A stretch of DNA of 64,000 bases from Podarcis muralis (GCF_964188315.1 NC_135661.1:81716001-81780000), one strand, 5' to 3'. Numbered from the stretch's first letter, positions 3,936 to 39,729 are shown. Made by a program: numbers and translations. Notes: a model not told the origin generated them from the sequence alone.

Positions 3936-4665
3936 TAATTTCCCCCCAACACATTTAAAAGGGCATCAGATGCAAATCAGCCAAAGGCCTGCAGGAAGAC
4001 AGACGTTTTTGCCTGGTGCCTAAAGGTGTATAATGAAGGCAGCAACTGGACTATTTCGGTTGGGGTCTTGGCCTGGGCATGAATCAAGCAAAAACTGAGG
4101 CTTGTGGTTGCCACGTGAGAGGGGTTTAATAAAGGGGAAGAGACCTTACCCTCAATCAAAAGGCCCATTTTATAGGGTTACCACCACCCAGGGGAGCGTC
4201 CAGACCCACCGTGTTGTGCTAGGAATTATAGAATTGCAGCAGGAACTCTTCTTAAAAGTAGCTGCCTTCAATACCTGAACCTAAACCTTCTTCTTCTTCT
4301 AATTCTCCATGATTTGCTTGCAGTTAAACGAACCCAGCAGTTATGACAGGACTTCTCATTGGAGACAGTTGTGCTGGGGGCTAGTTCATTCAACCCTCAG
4401 CAGAAATGCTCAGAGACCTAGCCATAAGCTGCTTAGAGGACACATTTGGAGGGATGAAAGGGAAGAAACTTCTAAAGGCACCAACGGGACCCCCTAAAAG
4501 ATGGGGGAAGGATCATGCCTGAGACCTCTAGGTTTGCACTCCCTGTTTCAAAACCCAGAGACCCTTCTGTTCTCAATGAATATTATTATTATTATTATTA
4601 ATAAATTTTATTTATACCCCGCCCTCCCCAGCCAAGGCTGGGCTCAGGGTGGCTAACAACCAATA

Positions 4666-25209: not shown

Positions 25210-25299
25210 TCAAGGAGACGACCCAACAGAGGGGACTTCCGATGGGTTTTGTCTGAACATCAACTCGTTGTAGACGTTCTGATCTCCATGCTGCAGACT
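25210..25299 (-). CDS. Gene C terminal exon, ITAM second half (SLQHGDQNVYNELMFRQNPSEVPSVGSSP*)
   Basis: ttctttag|AGT, phase 0, 90 nt to TGA. Confidence 0.8.
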   Translation of the reverse strand, partial: SLQHGDQNVYNELMFRQNPSEVPSVGSSP

Positions 25300-25538
25300 C
25301 TAAAGAAGAAATGGAGGCAGTGCATCAGGTGACATGATTGATGTTTGTGCCTGGGAGGAGGGAAAGATAAGAAATCCCATCCTCTGACCAGCTCTCAGAG
25401 ACACAAGAGCCCATCTCTCCTTTGCATCTAGGCTCCCTGGAGTGCACCCAGCACCACCTCCAAAATTATTGCCTAATATTGGCTTCTTCCGGGTCTTTTC
25501 TGAAGGGTAAATCATGAAGAGCTCCTGCCAATGCTTAC

Positions 25539-25580
25539 CTCGTATACCTGGTCAGGAGCAGAGGAACTGTTGGGCACGAC
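25539..25580 (-). CDS. Gene C 42-nt cytoplasmic exon, ITAM first half (VVPNSSSAPDQVYE)
   Basis: ttccag|GTC...GAG|gtaagc; phase 0-0; same length as the paralogous exons in A, B and Z. Confidence 0.82.
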
Positions 25581-25959
25581 CTGGAATTAATTAAAAATGG
25601 TTGAAAGTCATTTATTGGTTCAAATGCCCGCTCAGCCATGAAGCTTATTGGGTGACCAGCTACTGCAGCCATGTCCAAAGTCTATTTCAGGGACCTAATC
25701 TGGCCCACCGGTCGATTTAATTCAGCCCCCGTGGCAGTATATGTCCTGGGATTAAATCCTTAAAAAAGGTCAACAACTTCAATCCTAAAAAGAGTTTGGG
25801 CACTCCTGAGCTACTGTCTCTTAGCCTAAGCTTTGTGTTAATGTAGCACCTGAAAAATCACTGTGGGGTGGGGATTATCATGTGATACATTTGTTACTAT
25901 GCATTTTAATAAATACATATCTTCCTGTTCAAAGTTGGTAAATTCCCCTGGGCAAGGAC

Positions 25960-26335
25960 TGTTATGCTCTCGACAGCACCTCAAAATCTGAAAGCCAATG
26001 TTGAATAGTTGTCAGGGACGGTGCTGAGGAGGGCTGCACTGAGGAAGAATGGTGGGAGTCTCCCCTTCCCCCTGATCCTGAAACTTCCCAGGAGCAGGAG
26101 GACAGTATAGATTTGGAACAGCGGTTTGCGGAGGGACATAGTTCAAATGGCAGAAGCTGGGAGATACTGGATGGGGAACAGCTAGCAGAAGAAACACTGG
26201 AAGAGAGAGGGTTAACAGATTCGCAGTCTGTGGACAGCATTCACCCACCTTCCCCAAAGACACGGAGAGCTCAGAAAGTGGCAGAAGAGAAAGTGCAGAG
26301 GGTACAACCTCAGATTACAAGACGTAGGAGGGATG
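25960..26335 (+). mobile_element. LTR-like repeat fragment
   Basis: Related, in opposite orientation, to 34800-35130; begins TGTTATG. Confidence 0.45.
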
Positions 26336-26513
26336 CAGATTAATGGGGGGGGGTGACCCTTAATTGGGAGCACCACCATTTCTAGGTAGACGTATTCTTT
26401 TCTCTCTCGCTGTGATTATTAAAGAATCTAACTGGTAAGACGTTCCTTTCGTTTGATCTTATTTACTGCCACAGGGGAGGAAGCTGATTCCCCAAAGCCT
26501 TTGTGTCGCCCAC

Positions 26514-26608
26514 TTGAGGCCTCACGTTTTGAGCAGGGGAGATGTTCTCATATAACGGTGTTACGGAGATGACCTGGGTGGGTGTCCCGTGGCTCTTACG
26601 ATGGACGC
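26514..26608 (-). CDS. Gene C first cytoplasmic exon (CVHRKSHGTPTQVISVTPLYENISPAQNVRPQ)
   Basis: tttctcag|GC, phase 1-0, 95 nt (alternative in-frame donor at 26526); YENI is homologous to YEND/YENV of B and A. Confidence 0.8.
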
Positions 26609-27021
26609 CTGAGAAAGGGAGGAGGTTCAGAGTCAAATGTTAACATCCAATAATAATACAATAATAATAATATTCCTGCATTGCAGCGGGTTGGACTGGA
26701 TGATCCTCAGGGTCCCTTTCAACTCTACTGATCTATGATTCTGTGCTTCATGACGCTTGCTTGCAATCTGCTGCCTGTCAGTGTTGACCGTCCTGAGCTA
26801 GATGGACCACTAGCATGATCTCCTAGGTTCCTAGGAGCAGTTTTTACAGGGTCTCCAAAGGGTCTAAGGAAAGGGGTGGATTTTAAGCCTACAAACATAT
26901 CTCCTTCCTTAATACGTGGGAGACTCCAGGTTCCCCATCTCCTTCCTGCTCTGGACATGAACCATCATTTCTTTCTCACGACTGGGAGTCTTGTGCTCCC
27001 AGGTTCCAGTGTGTTACTCAC

Positions 27022-27120
27022 AGAGAAAAAAGTAAAGCAGAAACCCAGCTCCGACGAGTACCAGCAGAATCACAATGATGACGATGGTGGCCACCACACT
27101 TTTTGAAGGGTTGACTGGGC
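27022..27120 (-). CDS. Gene C transmembrane exon (GPVNPSKSVVATIVIIVILLVLVGAGFLLYFFL)
   Basis: ccgcag|GC...T|gtgagt; 99 nt, phase 1-1; strongly hydrophobic and uncharged. Confidence 0.85.
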
Positions 27121-27278
27121 CTGCGGAGAATATTTTTAGGAACTTCAGTTGCTAGGTGAAATCCATCCCTTGATCTGAAAGGAGCAAGGTTAGCACCTCT
27201 GCTTGCTGCTCAGAACTGGAAATGTAAGAGTTCCCTCCCTCAGTACTTGGAGGTCAAACTATTGCTCTGAGTTCCCAC

Positions 27279-27398
27279 CTGTTTCTGTATCAGTGAAGTT
27301 ATTTTCTTTGTGTAGATCTGATAGTTCCTCTGTCGTTGATATTATGGTCCTGGTCTCAGTTTGTGAATACATTGAGAAGAAGATGAAATGGGTGGCAG
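27279..27398 (-). CDS. Gene C candidate signal-completion/stalk exon (AATHFIFFSMYSQTETRTIISTTEELSDLHKENNFTDTET)
   Basis: ctgcag|CT...ACAG|gtggga; 120 nt, phase 1-1, open; hydrophobic start, S/T/E-rich remainder, NFT sequon. Confidence 0.55.
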
Positions 27399-28319
27399 CT
27401 GCAGGGTGGGTGCCAGGAGTCCAGGTTCCGGCGTAAGCATAGGTAATTAAAAAGGAGTAAGTATAGGTAATTAATAAGGAGGATTTATTGTAAAAACTAA
27501 CAGATAACTCTGGACAGCTCTAACGAAGCAGCCGACATTATTACTCAAGATGACACTTCTGAAGACTCCTTCCGGTTCCTACAGAAGATATTGAACTTTC
27601 GCACCTTAAGAGTCTTGTTTTGCTTCCTGTCTAGCAGCCCTCCCATTCGCCAACTCTTCAGACTTATTGGATTAGCTCCAGCCTCTTCCCATTCTGACAG
27701 ACTATCTCTGTGTCTGCTTGCATCTGTTTGAACTTCCTGAGAGCTTTGGCTGTATTCTAGCCCACTCTCCGTTGTTCCCTTGGCAACCGGCATTTCAATG
27801 TCCAAGGGAGTCGCACTGGACACTCGCCACTGTTCAGCCTGCGTCAGATCTAACCCTCTCTTTTCTGCAGCTAGCTGTAAAGTTCCACTAGGAGCTGGCT
27901 CATTCCTGACAGTGGGGATGGACAGAGAAAAGGACCATTAACTTCAAGGAAACGGAAGAGGACTTGGGCCCCCTCCAGACTAGGGATAAGCAAATACTTC
28001 CATTTCTGTTTCTCATTTTTTCCAATCTTGGGTGGGGTTCAGTTCTCCACATTCGTTTGAAAGTTATAGAAAAGAAAATACACCTCCTGGTGAAAATCCA
28101 TTAACGTTTTAGGAGTGAATTTCTTCCAATATACATGTAATTTTGCCTGAGACATACGCTTTTACAAAGCAACTTTCCCTAAAAATGTAGAGACTGAAAA
28201 GAGAACTCAGCTCTGGGTGAATAAAAGGAACACACTGAAGGCGTCCCCCTAAAAGATGAGAAACTAGGGGGGGGAAACATACCTAAGATGGTTATGTTTA
28301 TATTCCGTTTCACATCCCA

Positions 28320-28990
28320 GAAATTATTATTTTTTAATGATTTTTCAAGTTTATACATTTCCATAAATTTACAGTCATTTTAACACTTCAAAACTCGACT
28401 CACTTCCCCCTCTTTCTGCGGTTCCATAAATTTATTTTTAACATCTTCTGCATACCCAAATTAATTTAATTTGTTCATTTATTCATCTACTTTAAATATA
28501 TACTCTTATGAAACTGCAGGTTATTACAATAATCCTGCCAATGTTCTTATCTGTTTAAAATTTCTCTGTAAATATTCAACAAACTATTTCCATTCTTTTA
28601 TTAAAAGTTTGTTATCTGGATTTCTTATTCTTCCGGTAAGTTTTGCCATTTCTGCATATTCCATAAGTTTTTGTATCCATTCTTCCTTTGGTGGGACTTC
28701 TACTTCTTTCCATTTTGGGGCAAGTAACATTCTTGCCGTTGTAGTAGCATGCATGAATAAGTTTCTATACAGTTCAGGTAGTTCTGTCCCTATAATTCCC
28801 AAAAGAAAAGTTTCTGGGTTTTTTATATTTATTTTTTACAAACATTATTTTAAACATCCTTTTCAATCCATTACATATCATTTCCCAGCAAGCTTTAACC
28901 TTCCTACAAAACTACCACATATGATACAAAGAACCTTCTTTCTATTTACATTTTCAACAATAATTTGATTTAGATTTATACATTTTTGCC
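28320..28990 (-). mobile_element. L1 3' fragment
   Basis: EEWIQKLMEYAEMAKLTGRIRN. Confidence 0.78.
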
Positions 28991-29011
28991 AATTTGCACG
29001 GTGTTAGATAC

Positions 29012-29769
29012 CATTGATATATCATTTTCATAACAGCCCAGAAATTCTTGCATTTATGGTGTATATGTTCCAGAGTCACTTAGCCTTAAATCCCCAGTTT
29101 CCCACCCAATGAAGGCAGATACATTTTCCTGTCCGCAGCAGAGGTTCCGCTATCCAAACGCTTGCCATGTGAAAATTCACTTATCCAAACGTGAGGCATT
29201 AGTACCCAACCTGGCTATATACACTGCAGATTCAGATATCCAAACAGCTGGACCCACATGCATCCTTAAACAACCTTTTGGGGGTTTCTCCCTGGTCCAT
29301 GGCAGGTGTTTCGCCAGAAACCATGGTGGGAGGGAGGAAGGGCAAGAGATCGGTCAAATTAGAGAGCATTTTGCCCTTCCTCATTTGCCCCTTGCAAGGT
29401 TTCAGAGGGTATCCCCAGGTTTCCCATCACCATTTAGGGGTAAGAATTTCATGGTTGGGAATGCAATAGAAATTTCCCCATAGGAAATCGTTGACTTGCA
29501 AACAGTCACCTAACAAAAGGATTTCCTGAGGACGCATTGTGTTTGGATAGCAAGAGCTGCGTATATATGGCACCTGATAAGAGATAAAAACCCAATTTCT
29601 CTCATCAATTGTCCCTTGGTCCCAGAGCAGATAGTAAGTTGCTTTAGGTCAGTACCTTCTGTTGTGAAGACGGCAGTCTGTGATTCTGGAGAATTTCCTT
29701 CAGTCGTGAAGGGCCTTCCAAGACTGTCCTGGGCTTGAGTCATCAGGAAGCAAGAACTCAGGATGAAAT
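29012..29769 (-). pseudogene. Gene C disrupted IgV exon
   Basis: Begins gacag|AT TTC ATC CTG AGT TCT TGC like the paralogs; 1-nt frameshift at the C-strand Trp, ~420-bp insertion, 27-nt deletion of the DCSLRIT segment, premature TAA after DSGTYTP. Confidence 0.85.
29135..29558. mobile_element. Non-autonomous TIR element inserted in gene C IgV exon
   Basis: CAGC...GCTG ends flanked by CG/CG; internal inverted GCTATCCAAAC (29149) / GTTTGGATAGC (29541); exon homology resumes on both sides. Confidence 0.6.
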
Positions 29770-29959
29770 CTGTCGGGTGGAGAAGAAGGAAAAAAATATG
29801 GACCACCTCTCTCCATATTAACCGACCCGGACCCTGAGATCATCTTCTGAGGCCCATCTTCGTTGGCCTCCTTTGTGAGAGGGTGGCAACACCAGGGCCT
29901 TTTCTGCAGTGGCTCCACGTTTGTGCAATGATCTCCCCAGGGAGGTTTGGCCAGCGCCT

Positions 29960-30270
29960 TCATTATACACCTTTAGGTGCCAGGCAAAAATATTCCTCTT
30001 TAACCAGGACTTTGGTTGATTGACGTTCAGTGCCCTTTTAAAATGCAGAGGGCCTTCTCGGTAGTGGCACCCGCCCTGGGTAGTGGCACCGCCCTCCCAC
30101 CAGGTGTCAAAGAGCAAAACAACTACCAGACTTCCCCCCCAAGGCAGCCCTGTTTAGGGAAGCTTTTAATGTTTAATAGATTATTGTATTTTAATATTTT
30201 GTTGGAAGCCGCCCAGAGTGGCTGGGGAAACCCAGCCAGATGGGCAAGGTACAAATACTAAATTATTATA
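29960..30270 (+). mobile_element. L2 3' fragment
   Basis: CAGAGGGCCTTCTCGGTAGTGGCACC...GCCGCCCAGAGTGGCTGGGG. Confidence 0.75.
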
Positions 30271-31526
30271 ATTTTATTATTATTTGGTTGGCATTTTGTA
30301 CACACCAGCAACATGTCCTGGACTGCCCCTGCACCCAAGAATTGTTCCGCAAACAATAAGTGCAGCCCTTTATTGGGCAAGCGAGTCAGTTCTTTTTCCT
30401 GGCAGCTCAGCCTCAGCCGCCTTCTGGGGCATGAAAAAAGGGGAAACGTTCTGGCACTTCCCCTTCCAAGACCCTCCCACGCTTCTAGGTAAGTAAACAG
30501 TAGCGTAAAGGGGCCCAGTGAAGGAGGTCTGCGCCCCTGTCTGTGCTCACCCCCTTCAGGGACCTCAGGATGAGTCCTTTCTACTCACAAGGACCGCATC
30601 TCATTGGGTACCCAGGTTCCTCCTCCAACAGTTTTGCCTCTCCATCCCTGGCTCAGAAAGGACCAGAGCCTGGTCCTCTGGTGTTCAGCGTTCAAAATTC
30701 CAATTGTTCCAGGCACACTTTGCGACAGGGAATTTCATCAGCACGAGCAGTTTCTGAGCTCTGGGGGCAGTACTGCGCCAAAGATTTCAGATTAAAACTG
30801 CAGCGGGGAGGAAAGGAGTGTCCTTTTCTGCCTCCCCACTTCCAGCTACTCTCTAAAGACGGAAAAGATACCCTCTTAAGAATATTAAGGGGGTGGGCAG
30901 GGGAAGGACTAGACCATGTGAAATACGAACATAATGTTTTAGCTGCAGTTTGTTCATTTTCAGCTTTGTATTTTTGTTATTAAAAAAAGCATGCCTAGGC
31001 ATTCTGTTGTTGTGCCCATAACCTAGGCTTAAACTGCCATTTAGCTCCTAGCTTTCATATCTCTAATACCACTGGTGCTACCCTCAGAGCTCCTTCTTGA
31101 GAAGTCTCTGAGGTCACGATCCTACCCCCAGCTCAGCTGCGTGTAAGCTTCTTTCATTCCAAAAGGAGTTTTTATGCCCTCTTCCAGGGCTCTTACCAGC
31201 AACCCCTTTGGAAATGGGGTCCGGATTCTGCATCCTAGTAGGTAGGAAACCGAGGTGTACAACAAGGTGGTCCCTAGCAGGCCTTTTGCATATAAATGCA
31301 TGTTTAATAAGGCATTTTCACTCAAAATGACACCATCCTCTAATTCGAATTCTTGAGAACTGCACCACCACAACATTTGGAGAAGGATGAAATCGGGTGC
31401 AGAGTTAGGTTTCGACATCTGCATTAGTGGGAGAGATGCAGATCTGTACTAAAAGACCAAATTCTTCCAGCCATCCTCAACTCCCCCCAGATAAGTCCTC
31501 TCCATTGCAGGGTGCTGACCTCTCAC

Positions 31527-31587
31527 CTGCTAAGAGCAGCATCTTCCAGGAGACCTTCCAGCCTCGAGTTCTGCGTGGCCTGTCCAT
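31527..31587 (-). CDS. Gene C leader exon (MDRPRRTRGWKVSWKMLLLA)
   Basis: ATG at 31587, donor GCAG|gtgaga, 61 nt, phase 1; paralog of the gene B leader. Confidence 0.8.
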
Positions 31588-38869: not shown

Positions 38870-38903
38870 AAACACCCATCTAGAGGCCCCCTGATTCACT
38901 CAC

Positions 38904-38998
38904 TTGAGGTTTTGCTTCTCCAGTTTGTGGATCATTCTCATATACCTGAGGGGTGGGTACAACCGGAGAAGTTGTTCTGCCATTCCGATGACGGGCAC
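38904..38998 (-). CDS. Gene B first cytoplasmic exon (RARHRNGRTTSPVVPTPQVYENDPQTGEAKPQ)
   Basis: ttgcag|GT...CAA|gtgagt; 95 nt, phase 1-0. Confidence 0.85.
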
Positions 38999-39729
38999 CT
39001 GCAAGAGGGAGAAGAAGGCTGGGAACCAGCTCTTAACATGGAACTCCTACCCTTTTACAGACTACGGTATACGCTTCTGCTCTGACAACAGGGTAACATC
39101 AGGTAAACTGCAGAAACCCTTTTCTTTACACTTTTTTTGTTATCCATTTGAATCTTGTCCTTAACAAGAAGGGGAACAGCAGTTTTTGCACAGGCACACG
39201 TACCAATCCTGGAAAAGCTCACATCCTGAAACAAGTGAATGTTTTAAAACCTTCAGAGATGTTTGTGCGTCAGATGGACTGGGGAGATACTGGTTCGAAT
39301 CCCCATCAATTAAACTCAAAGCATTTCATTCAGTAGTTGGACACGGAAAACACAGTTAAGGCTATTTGTTTAATTGACACTGAAATGGAGAATGCCTATG
39401 CCTATTGCTGAAAAGGTTTAACATGGGGAAATTCCACTAAGTGCTCTCTGAGCTTCTTGCAGGCCTGATAATGGTTGTTATTCTCTGCTAGCTAACACCT
39501 GAGTGTTTAACCTTAGATCAGGTGATTAAAGTATTGGATTGCAAATTCACCATCTTGGAAGGTTGGTGGCTGAGTCTTTGTTCCCGGACTCTGTAGGGGG
39601 AAAGATGTATAAAAGAGCCTGCAGAAGGGAGTGAATACAGCACCAGTCAAAATGGAGGCTGTAGGAAGAGAGAGGTCTCTGCTTAAAGGTCTGCTTGGAA
39701 TTATCTTTTATTTTGAATATGCTGAGCCT

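Follow-up and report, generated by a model that had tools for sequence, protein, structure and literature searches.

Can a receptor gene whose ligand-binding exon has been destroyed still encode a working protein? This question is raised by gene C, which occupies positions 25210-31587 on the minus strand of a 64-kb stretch of Podarcis muralis DNA (GCF_964188315.1 NC_135661.1:81716001-81780000; hereafter the window, whose coordinates are used throughout). The window carries a tandem cluster of CEACAM-like genes on its minus strand, with N-domain exons that match the Pfam V-set, and the genes adjoining gene C bear CEACAM-like labels at NCBI. We found that gene C is a real, annotated, N-domain-less CEACAM derivative, and that "Ig-less, ITAM-bearing transmembrane protein", the description offered by a first-pass annotation made from the sequence alone, is correct (Ig, immunoglobulin; ITAM, immunoreceptor tyrosine-based activation motif). 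That it is also a maintained, functional protein is plausible but unproven, and we regard the case for this as evenly poised.

Window positions 41587-15210, once reverse-complemented, are identical base for base to GCA_964188315.1 OZ076960.1:81731210-81757587. When the tail of P0004, a Rhineura floridana CEACAM, served as query in a full HMMER search, it matched a 169-aa protein, XP_077788360.1, and this led to the NCBI entry for gene C. This is LOC144328497, a protein-coding gene labeled "uncharacterized protein", with four isoforms:

X1, 202 aa: the full model with seven exons (XP_077788358.1; P0014).
X2, 173 aa: an alternative start, without the leader exon; the transmembrane (TM) exon is present.
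X3, 169 aa: without the TM exon; a 120-nt exon is present.
X4, 129 aa: without the 120-nt exon and without the TM exon.

Joining the seven exons in the window gave a translation that matched X1 exactly. The NCBI pipeline normally needs transcript evidence for alternative isoforms, and a set of four is unlike ab initio output; we infer from the existence of the four Gnomon isoforms that gene C is transcribed. No paper in the literature searched mentions LOC144328497, and gene C, annotated but uncharacterised, is unrecognised there as a CEACAM derivative. Its exons, together with a candidate 3' signal, are as follows:

31587-31527, minus strand: exon 1, leader, 61 nt, ending in phase 1; the ATG lies in a good Kozak context (acgATGG) and the donor is CAG/gtgaga.
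29769-29656, minus strand: mini-exon (stub), 114 nt from the start of the dead N exon, with the donor AAG/gtactg; in all four NCBI isoforms.
27398-27279, minus strand: 120-nt exon, phase 1-1, encoding AATHFIFFSMYSQTETRTIISTTEELSDLHKENNFTDTETG; in X1-X3, not in X4.
27120-27022, minus strand: TM exon, phase 1-1, encoding the stalk PVNPSKS and an uncharged TM segment that ends FFLC; in X1 and X2 only.
26608-26526, minus strand: cytoplasmic exon 1, encoding YENI (pYxN, a Grb2-type site), with the annotated donor AAC/gtgagg.
25580-25539, minus strand: cytoplasmic exon 2 (ITAM exon 1), encoding VVPNSSSAPDQVYE with the first ITAM tyrosine; a phase-0 intron follows after Y-x.
25299-25210, minus strand: cytoplasmic exon 3 (ITAM exon 2), encoding SLQHGDQNVYNEL... 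with the second ITAM tyrosine and the TGA stop.
24822-24817, minus strand: candidate polyadenylation signal, the first AATAAA past the stop codon, 387 nt downstream.

Exon 1 encodes the first two thirds of the leader; the remaining third of the signal peptide is encoded by the stub. All four isoforms include this 114-nt start of the dead N exon (29769-29656) and leave it at the cryptic donor AAG/gtactg, which sits upstream of every N-exon lesion. The 12 splice sites, the ATG and the 609 nt of the X1 model are all intact; because its stop codon falls within the last exon, X1 is not a target of nonsense-mediated decay. The first-pass annotation had joined six of these exons and skipped the N exon altogether. 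We confirmed that the six are open with AG/GT borders and that their 507 nt give a 168-aa translation identical to the one proposed; the clean 31527->27398 skip, on the other hand, occurs in no annotated isoform, since each keeps the 114-nt stub. The YENI exon was correctly read as open, but its donor had been placed at 26514, whereas the conserved and annotated donor, AAC/gtgagg at 26526, lies 12 nt upstream and is homologous to AAG/gtgaga in Rhineura.

The X1 protein begins with a signal peptide (residues 1-34) that has the family's TQAQ end, followed by a 71-aa ectodomain that is 31% Ser/Thr, lacks Cys and has a single NFT sequon; the 120-nt exon adds a short hydrophobic patch to it. The TM segment VVATIVIIVILLVLVGAGFLLYFFLC is strongly hydrophobic (KD19 3.1), has no charged residue and ends ...FFLC, and the 70-residue tail carries YENI, YESL and YNEL. 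The ITAM pattern [DE]xxYxx[LI]x6-8Yxx[LI] matches DQVYESLQHGDQNVYNEL in X1 (DQVYESL-x7-YNEL), in agreement with the earlier description of this motif as canonical. More broadly, the tail has the make-up of an ITAM-type CEACAM1-like tail: three exons, YEN, Yxx[LI]-x7-Yxx[LI] and a phase-0 intron after Y-x. No Pfam domain was detected in X1, and no Ig domain at E-values up to 10, while Rhineura P0004 gave a V-set match at 5.8e-9. In a single-sequence AlphaFold2 model of X1, the only confident parts were the helix of the signal peptide and that of the TM segment (residues 103-138, pLDDT ~90), and there was no beta-sandwich. The IgV (Ig variable) N domain, the defining feature of CEACAM proteins, is therefore absent from the product.

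The N exon itself persists as a relic, broken up as follows:

29769-29606, minus strand: N-exon piece 1, open, but without the WYRG and IFTY core residues.
29655-29606, minus strand: the remainder of piece 1, now intronic; the C-strand WYRG motif has other residues in place of W/F/R.
29605-29135, minus strand: insertion 1, 471 bp, splitting the N exon; ~10 codons are lost at the junction.
29134-29060 (to 29054 with the stop), minus strand: N-exon piece 2, C''-F strands NVSAFIGWETG..DLRLSDSGTYTP, with a ~8-codon deletion.
29053-28320, minus strand: insertion 2, ~730 bp of sequence derived from a long interspersed nuclear element (LINE) and other sequence, parting F from the G strand.
28319-28283 (28281 with the donor), minus strand: N-exon piece 3, G strand WDVKRNINITILG, with the original donor G/gtatgt.

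With the two insertions, the deletion and a TAA stop at 29056-29054 in piece 2, the exon carries four or more independent lesions; the four previously claimed were all located. The relic is homologous to the neighbouring N exons (nhmmer E 1e-20, with a profile of the neighbours' N-exon 5' ends), and the leader region of gene C is homologous to the neighbour's leader region. Its position in the cluster and its homologous leader and N exons make gene C a CEACAM by descent; the homology of the relic, together with the CEACAM ITAM-type tail, bears out the proposal that a receptor gene lost its IgV exon here.

We then compared gene C with region L001 of Zootoca vivipara, which was reached via the neighbour's protein P0002 and is collinear from the neighbour gene to window position 27560. 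L001 stops 160 nt before the 120-nt exon, and the comparison covers the leader and stub exons. The 471-bp insertion (88% identity), the TAA stop and most of the ~8-codon deletion are common to both species, with only the last 6 nt of that deletion missing in Podarcis alone. Because these lesions are common to both, the N exon died before the Podarcis/Zootoca split. The LINE part of insertion 2, an ORF2 3' fragment with an open frame at 28587-28835, shows 69-74% raw identity to three other copies in the window, each overlapping different parts, a hint that the LINE insertion may be several times older than the split. The 471-bp insertion has no second copy within the window. What is retained in Zootoca is the ATG, the open leader exon and its donor, the stub acceptor, the open stub exon and the cryptic donor; the promoter and leader region is ~90% conserved.

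How readily could the remaining frame have stayed intact by chance? Neutral rates were taken from 3.8 kb of aligned non-exonic sequence (0.085 substitutions, as p-distance, and 0.0065 indel events per site), and half of the Podarcis/Zootoca divergence was simulated on the present exons and splice dinucleotides in 20,000 runs. Under neutrality, the frame was intact since the split in 2.7% of runs (0.027) for X1 and in 4.8% (0.048) for the first-pass model. At double the elapsed time, these values were 0.07% (0.0007) and 0.3%, respectively. Since the loss predates the split, intact signalling exons are mildly improbable under neutrality; the persistence of the frame beyond chance is suggestive, not overwhelming.

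The tail itself has a longer record. The same type of tail is found on IgV-bearing CEACAMs from Rhineura, Paroedura, Gekko, Hemicordylus and Lerista, five other squamates that include geckos, a skink and a cordylid, and gene C retains all nine invariant columns in a seven-sequence alignment of squamate ITAM-type CEACAM tails. A codon comparison of the tail with the Rhineura gene (L003) gave a dS of 0.55-0.66 and an omega of 0.25-0.38, values that show purifying selection along most of the long path separating the two genes and do not resolve the period after N-domain loss. Among the tail matches, P0006 (63% identity; PLYENISP and LQHGDQ in common) was found by full HMMER at E 2e-13; a word-indexed homology search with the Rhineura tail region found its query only and missed P0006, whose length was in range, and that negative has no weight. 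A further match to the tail query, P0011 (E 1.2e-4, in three stretches), was rejected as a chance low-complexity match to a phage protein. P0011 is a 2569-aa protein on ENA contig ctg519344c (L004), encoded beside P22-portal and SU10-adaptor genes.

We propose that gene C derives from a CEACAM1-like ITAM-type gene that had its N-domain exon destroyed before Podarcis and Zootoca diverged, and whose remainder may still be a transcription unit. Splicing would run from the leader exon into the 114-nt stub of the dead N exon, leave it at the cryptic GT, and continue through the 120-nt and TM exons to the three that encode the cytoplasmic tail. X1, the main product, is predicted to be a type I membrane protein with an unfolded Ser/Thr-rich ectodomain, an uncharged TM helix, a juxtamembrane Cys and a YENI plus ITAM tail. 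Src-family kinases would phosphorylate this tail; the doubly phosphorylated ITAM would recruit Syk/ZAP-70 and pYENI would recruit Grb2, as in the IgV-bearing CEACAM decoy receptors. Because there is no ligand-binding domain, engagement would occur in cis (e.g., by lateral association with other CEACAMs) or signalling would be tonic. The first-pass annotation had likewise favoured continued selection as a signalling protein over a pseudogene. Ancestry, annotation, the old loss of the N exon and the mild improbability under neutrality speak for that part of its reading, with selection on gene C and signalling by it being inferred; the leader/stub dN/dS of ~1.3, the splice path and the TM-less isoforms speak against.

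The observations that weigh against a maintained protein are several. In the comparison with Zootoca, leader and stub differ at 19/174 sites with a dN/dS of 1.28, and the stub's 24 mature codons (29656-29727 versus L001 ~28347-28418) have 10 nonsynonymous and 0 synonymous changes; leader and stub therefore show no amino-acid constraint, and they are no better conserved than the adjoining intron. The mature stub codons have diverged by 13.9%, against a background of 8.5%, and the signal-peptide part of the stub is unchanged in amino acids; the excess may reflect chance, relaxed constraint or diversifying selection. Isoforms X3 and X4 (2/4) drop the TM exon, so that their 'cytoplasmic' tail would be secreted, and they look like splicing noise. 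With an uncharged TM segment and an ectodomain without Cys, X1 has no evident known mode of receptor pairing. The orthologous interval in Zootoca contains no called protein-coding gene, and the protein searches returned no orthologue of gene C. Finally, a neutral survival of 3-5% is not small, because several N-dead CEACAM genes may exist per genome.

Such observations would fit a transcribed unitary pseudogene in slow decay, whose short remaining exons (~500-600 nt) are intact by luck and whose proteins are functionless by-products. We take this to be a serious possibility, though one against which we lean. By the specialists' operational rule, a stop in the N-domain exon makes a CEACAM gene a pseudogene (PMC13278318), and gene C has such a stop; the dN/dS of ~1.3 holds for both exons that can be compared, their conservation does not exceed that of the flanking intron, and the TM-less isoforms and the uncalled Zootoca locus are as expected. 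A handful of such genes per genome would bring a neutral survival of 0.03-0.05 within reach. However, the loss of the N exon goes back at least to the Podarcis/Zootoca split, and probably further. Dog CEACAM pseudogenes have lesions in both N and cytoplasmic exons (PMC2110893), whereas in gene C all 12 splice sites, the ATG and 609 nt have stayed whole, the leader-rescuing cryptic donor is conserved in Zootoca, and every invariant tail residue is present.

The pseudogene rule has a stated rationale, which gene C appears to evade. In a survey of reptile CEACAMs, Zimmermann & Kammerer (2026; PMC13278318), who regard the squamate CEACAM1L ITAM-type genes as putative decoy/endocytic receptors, argued that inactivation of the N exon abolishes expression, since this exon encodes the end of the leader. 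Gene C escapes this argument because its cryptic donor retains the leader-coding 5' end. It shows a way around the equation of a broken N exon with a dead gene: the 114 nt that encode the leader end are kept, and the remainder of the exon is discarded.

A second alternative, which we consider improbable, is that the gene model is an artefact of annotation or prediction, with exons that are never joined in vivo and a silent locus. The LOC identifier is new, earlier annotations probably had no gene call here, and the protein collection searched held no transcript-derived copies of the proteins. Against this, four alternative isoforms are hard to attribute to an ab initio model, the junctions are all canonical, and the promoter/leader region is homologous to that of an expressed neighbour besides being well conserved in Zootoca. 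Least likely of all, in our judgment, is that the TM and ITAM exons are kept for transcripts from another IgV-bearing gene on the same strand (the upstream neighbour or a 1857-aa model), with the Ig-less products minor: the 1857-aa model does cover the entire 26-kb locus, the family's N, IgC and TM exons are all phase 1-1 and cross-gene splicing would therefore be in frame, and X2 lacks the gene's own leader exon, but a full HMMER search with the P0004 tail at unrestricted length found LOC144328497 as the only Podarcis match and no longer protein with that tail, and the upstream neighbour has TM and tail exons of its own.

The 1857-aa model is a multi-Ig gene model on the minus strand that covers window positions 15210-41587 (L002 1-26378) and overruns both ends, and gene C and its neighbours fall inside its range. 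It is probably the 16-IgC CEACAM1 of the wall lizard described in PMC13278318. As for the upstream neighbour (P0001, window 38883-39032), the annotated P. muralis protein reads through after the YEN exon (...AKPQVSESGGL) and has no ITAM; its Zootoca orthologue, P0002, includes both ITAM exons.

Among known systems, the closest to gene C are the squamate ITAM-type CEACAM1-like genes (Rhineura P0004, Zootoca P0002/P0003), with which it has in common the cluster, the leader exon, the TM exon and the three-exon tail. The layout of that tail is the same, with YEN followed by an ITAM that is split by a phase-0 intron after Y-x, and the invariant residues are common to all. Unlike these genes, gene C has neither IgV nor IgC, only a 71-aa unfolded stub, and is a pseudogene by the rule of PMC13278318. 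The nearest precedent within the family is mammalian CEACAM20, which, like gene C, combines a truncated N with an ITAM (N-A1-B1-A2-B2-TM-Cyt) and functions with its truncated N exon (PMC2110893). However, CEACAM20 keeps four IgC domains and thus a folded ectodomain, whereas the truncation in gene C came about through insertions and a cryptic donor. The CEACAM20 orthologue group is conserved and was not found in reptiles (PMC13278318).

Outside the family, DAP12/TYROBP, FcR gamma and CD3 zeta are likewise small type I membrane proteins whose ectodomain is tiny and whose ITAM is cytoplasmic; they are unrelated by descent. DAP12-type adaptors pair with receptors through an acidic TM residue (Asp) and form dimers through an ectodomain Cys; gene C has neither and does not belong to this type. 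The first-pass annotation had likened gene C to SIT1/TRIM-type adaptors, and a likeness to SIT1, TRIM/TRAT1, LAT and NTAL does exist in the short ectodomain, the Grb2-type YxN tyrosine motif and the Cys at the TM/cytosol border. It is functional only: SIT and TRIM form disulfide dimers and LAT and NTAL are palmitoylated at CxxC, whereas gene C has 0 ectodomain Cys and one juxtamembrane Cys. These TRAP adaptors, moreover, carry several YxN/YxxM motifs and no canonical ITAM, while gene C has one YxN plus an ITAM in place of their motifs and shows no homology to them; it is not a member of this group. A language-model comparison returned C1orf162, a CD79B isoform, TMEM154, LST1 and TYROBP as look-alikes of gene C, all scoring <0.9 and to be read as leads only.

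Should the tail exons turn out to be conserved among lacertids, gene C would document the conversion of a ligand-binding immune receptor into a signalling adaptor, and "pseudogenes" in fast-evolving receptor clusters would merit re-examination. If they are not, it would be a well-dated example of the slow decay of short exons after gene death. A bolder and rather unlikely version of the former holds that a lacertid CEACAM decoy receptor turned into a ligand-blind ITAM adaptor by cryptic-donor rescue, has been under selection for tens of millions of years, and associates in cis with CEACAMs. Were this true, a receptor gene would have given rise de novo to a DAP12-like adaptor, which would provide other CEACAMs with an activating output.

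For the 120-nt exon, no homologue was found in the window (repeats included), in Zootoca region L001 or in the Rhineura gene L003. The exon opens with a hydrophobic stretch that resembles a leader end, and when it was aligned locally, in pairs, with N-exon 5' ends from two paralogues, the matches lay in register with the acceptor (z ~4), as for a truncated second N exon. This origin was rejected: a profile hidden Markov model of six N-exon 5' ends missed the 120-nt exon and found the N-exon relic (E 1e-20). The exon also had no match to the relic, to an N-exon fragment at 4119-4052 or to an IgC exon, and the intron that follows it, considered as a hidden IgV (translation 'LREGTLTFP'), gave nothing significant. 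The fragment at 4052-4119 (minus strand), which nhmmer scored at E 3.6e-5, copies part of an N-exon 5' end; the intact N exon at 5444-5050 lies ~900 nt upstream of it, and in Rhineura a comparable broken copy (L003 11923-12060) lies downstream of the gene's own N exon. Partial duplication of the N-exon 5' end may thus recur in the CEACAM family.

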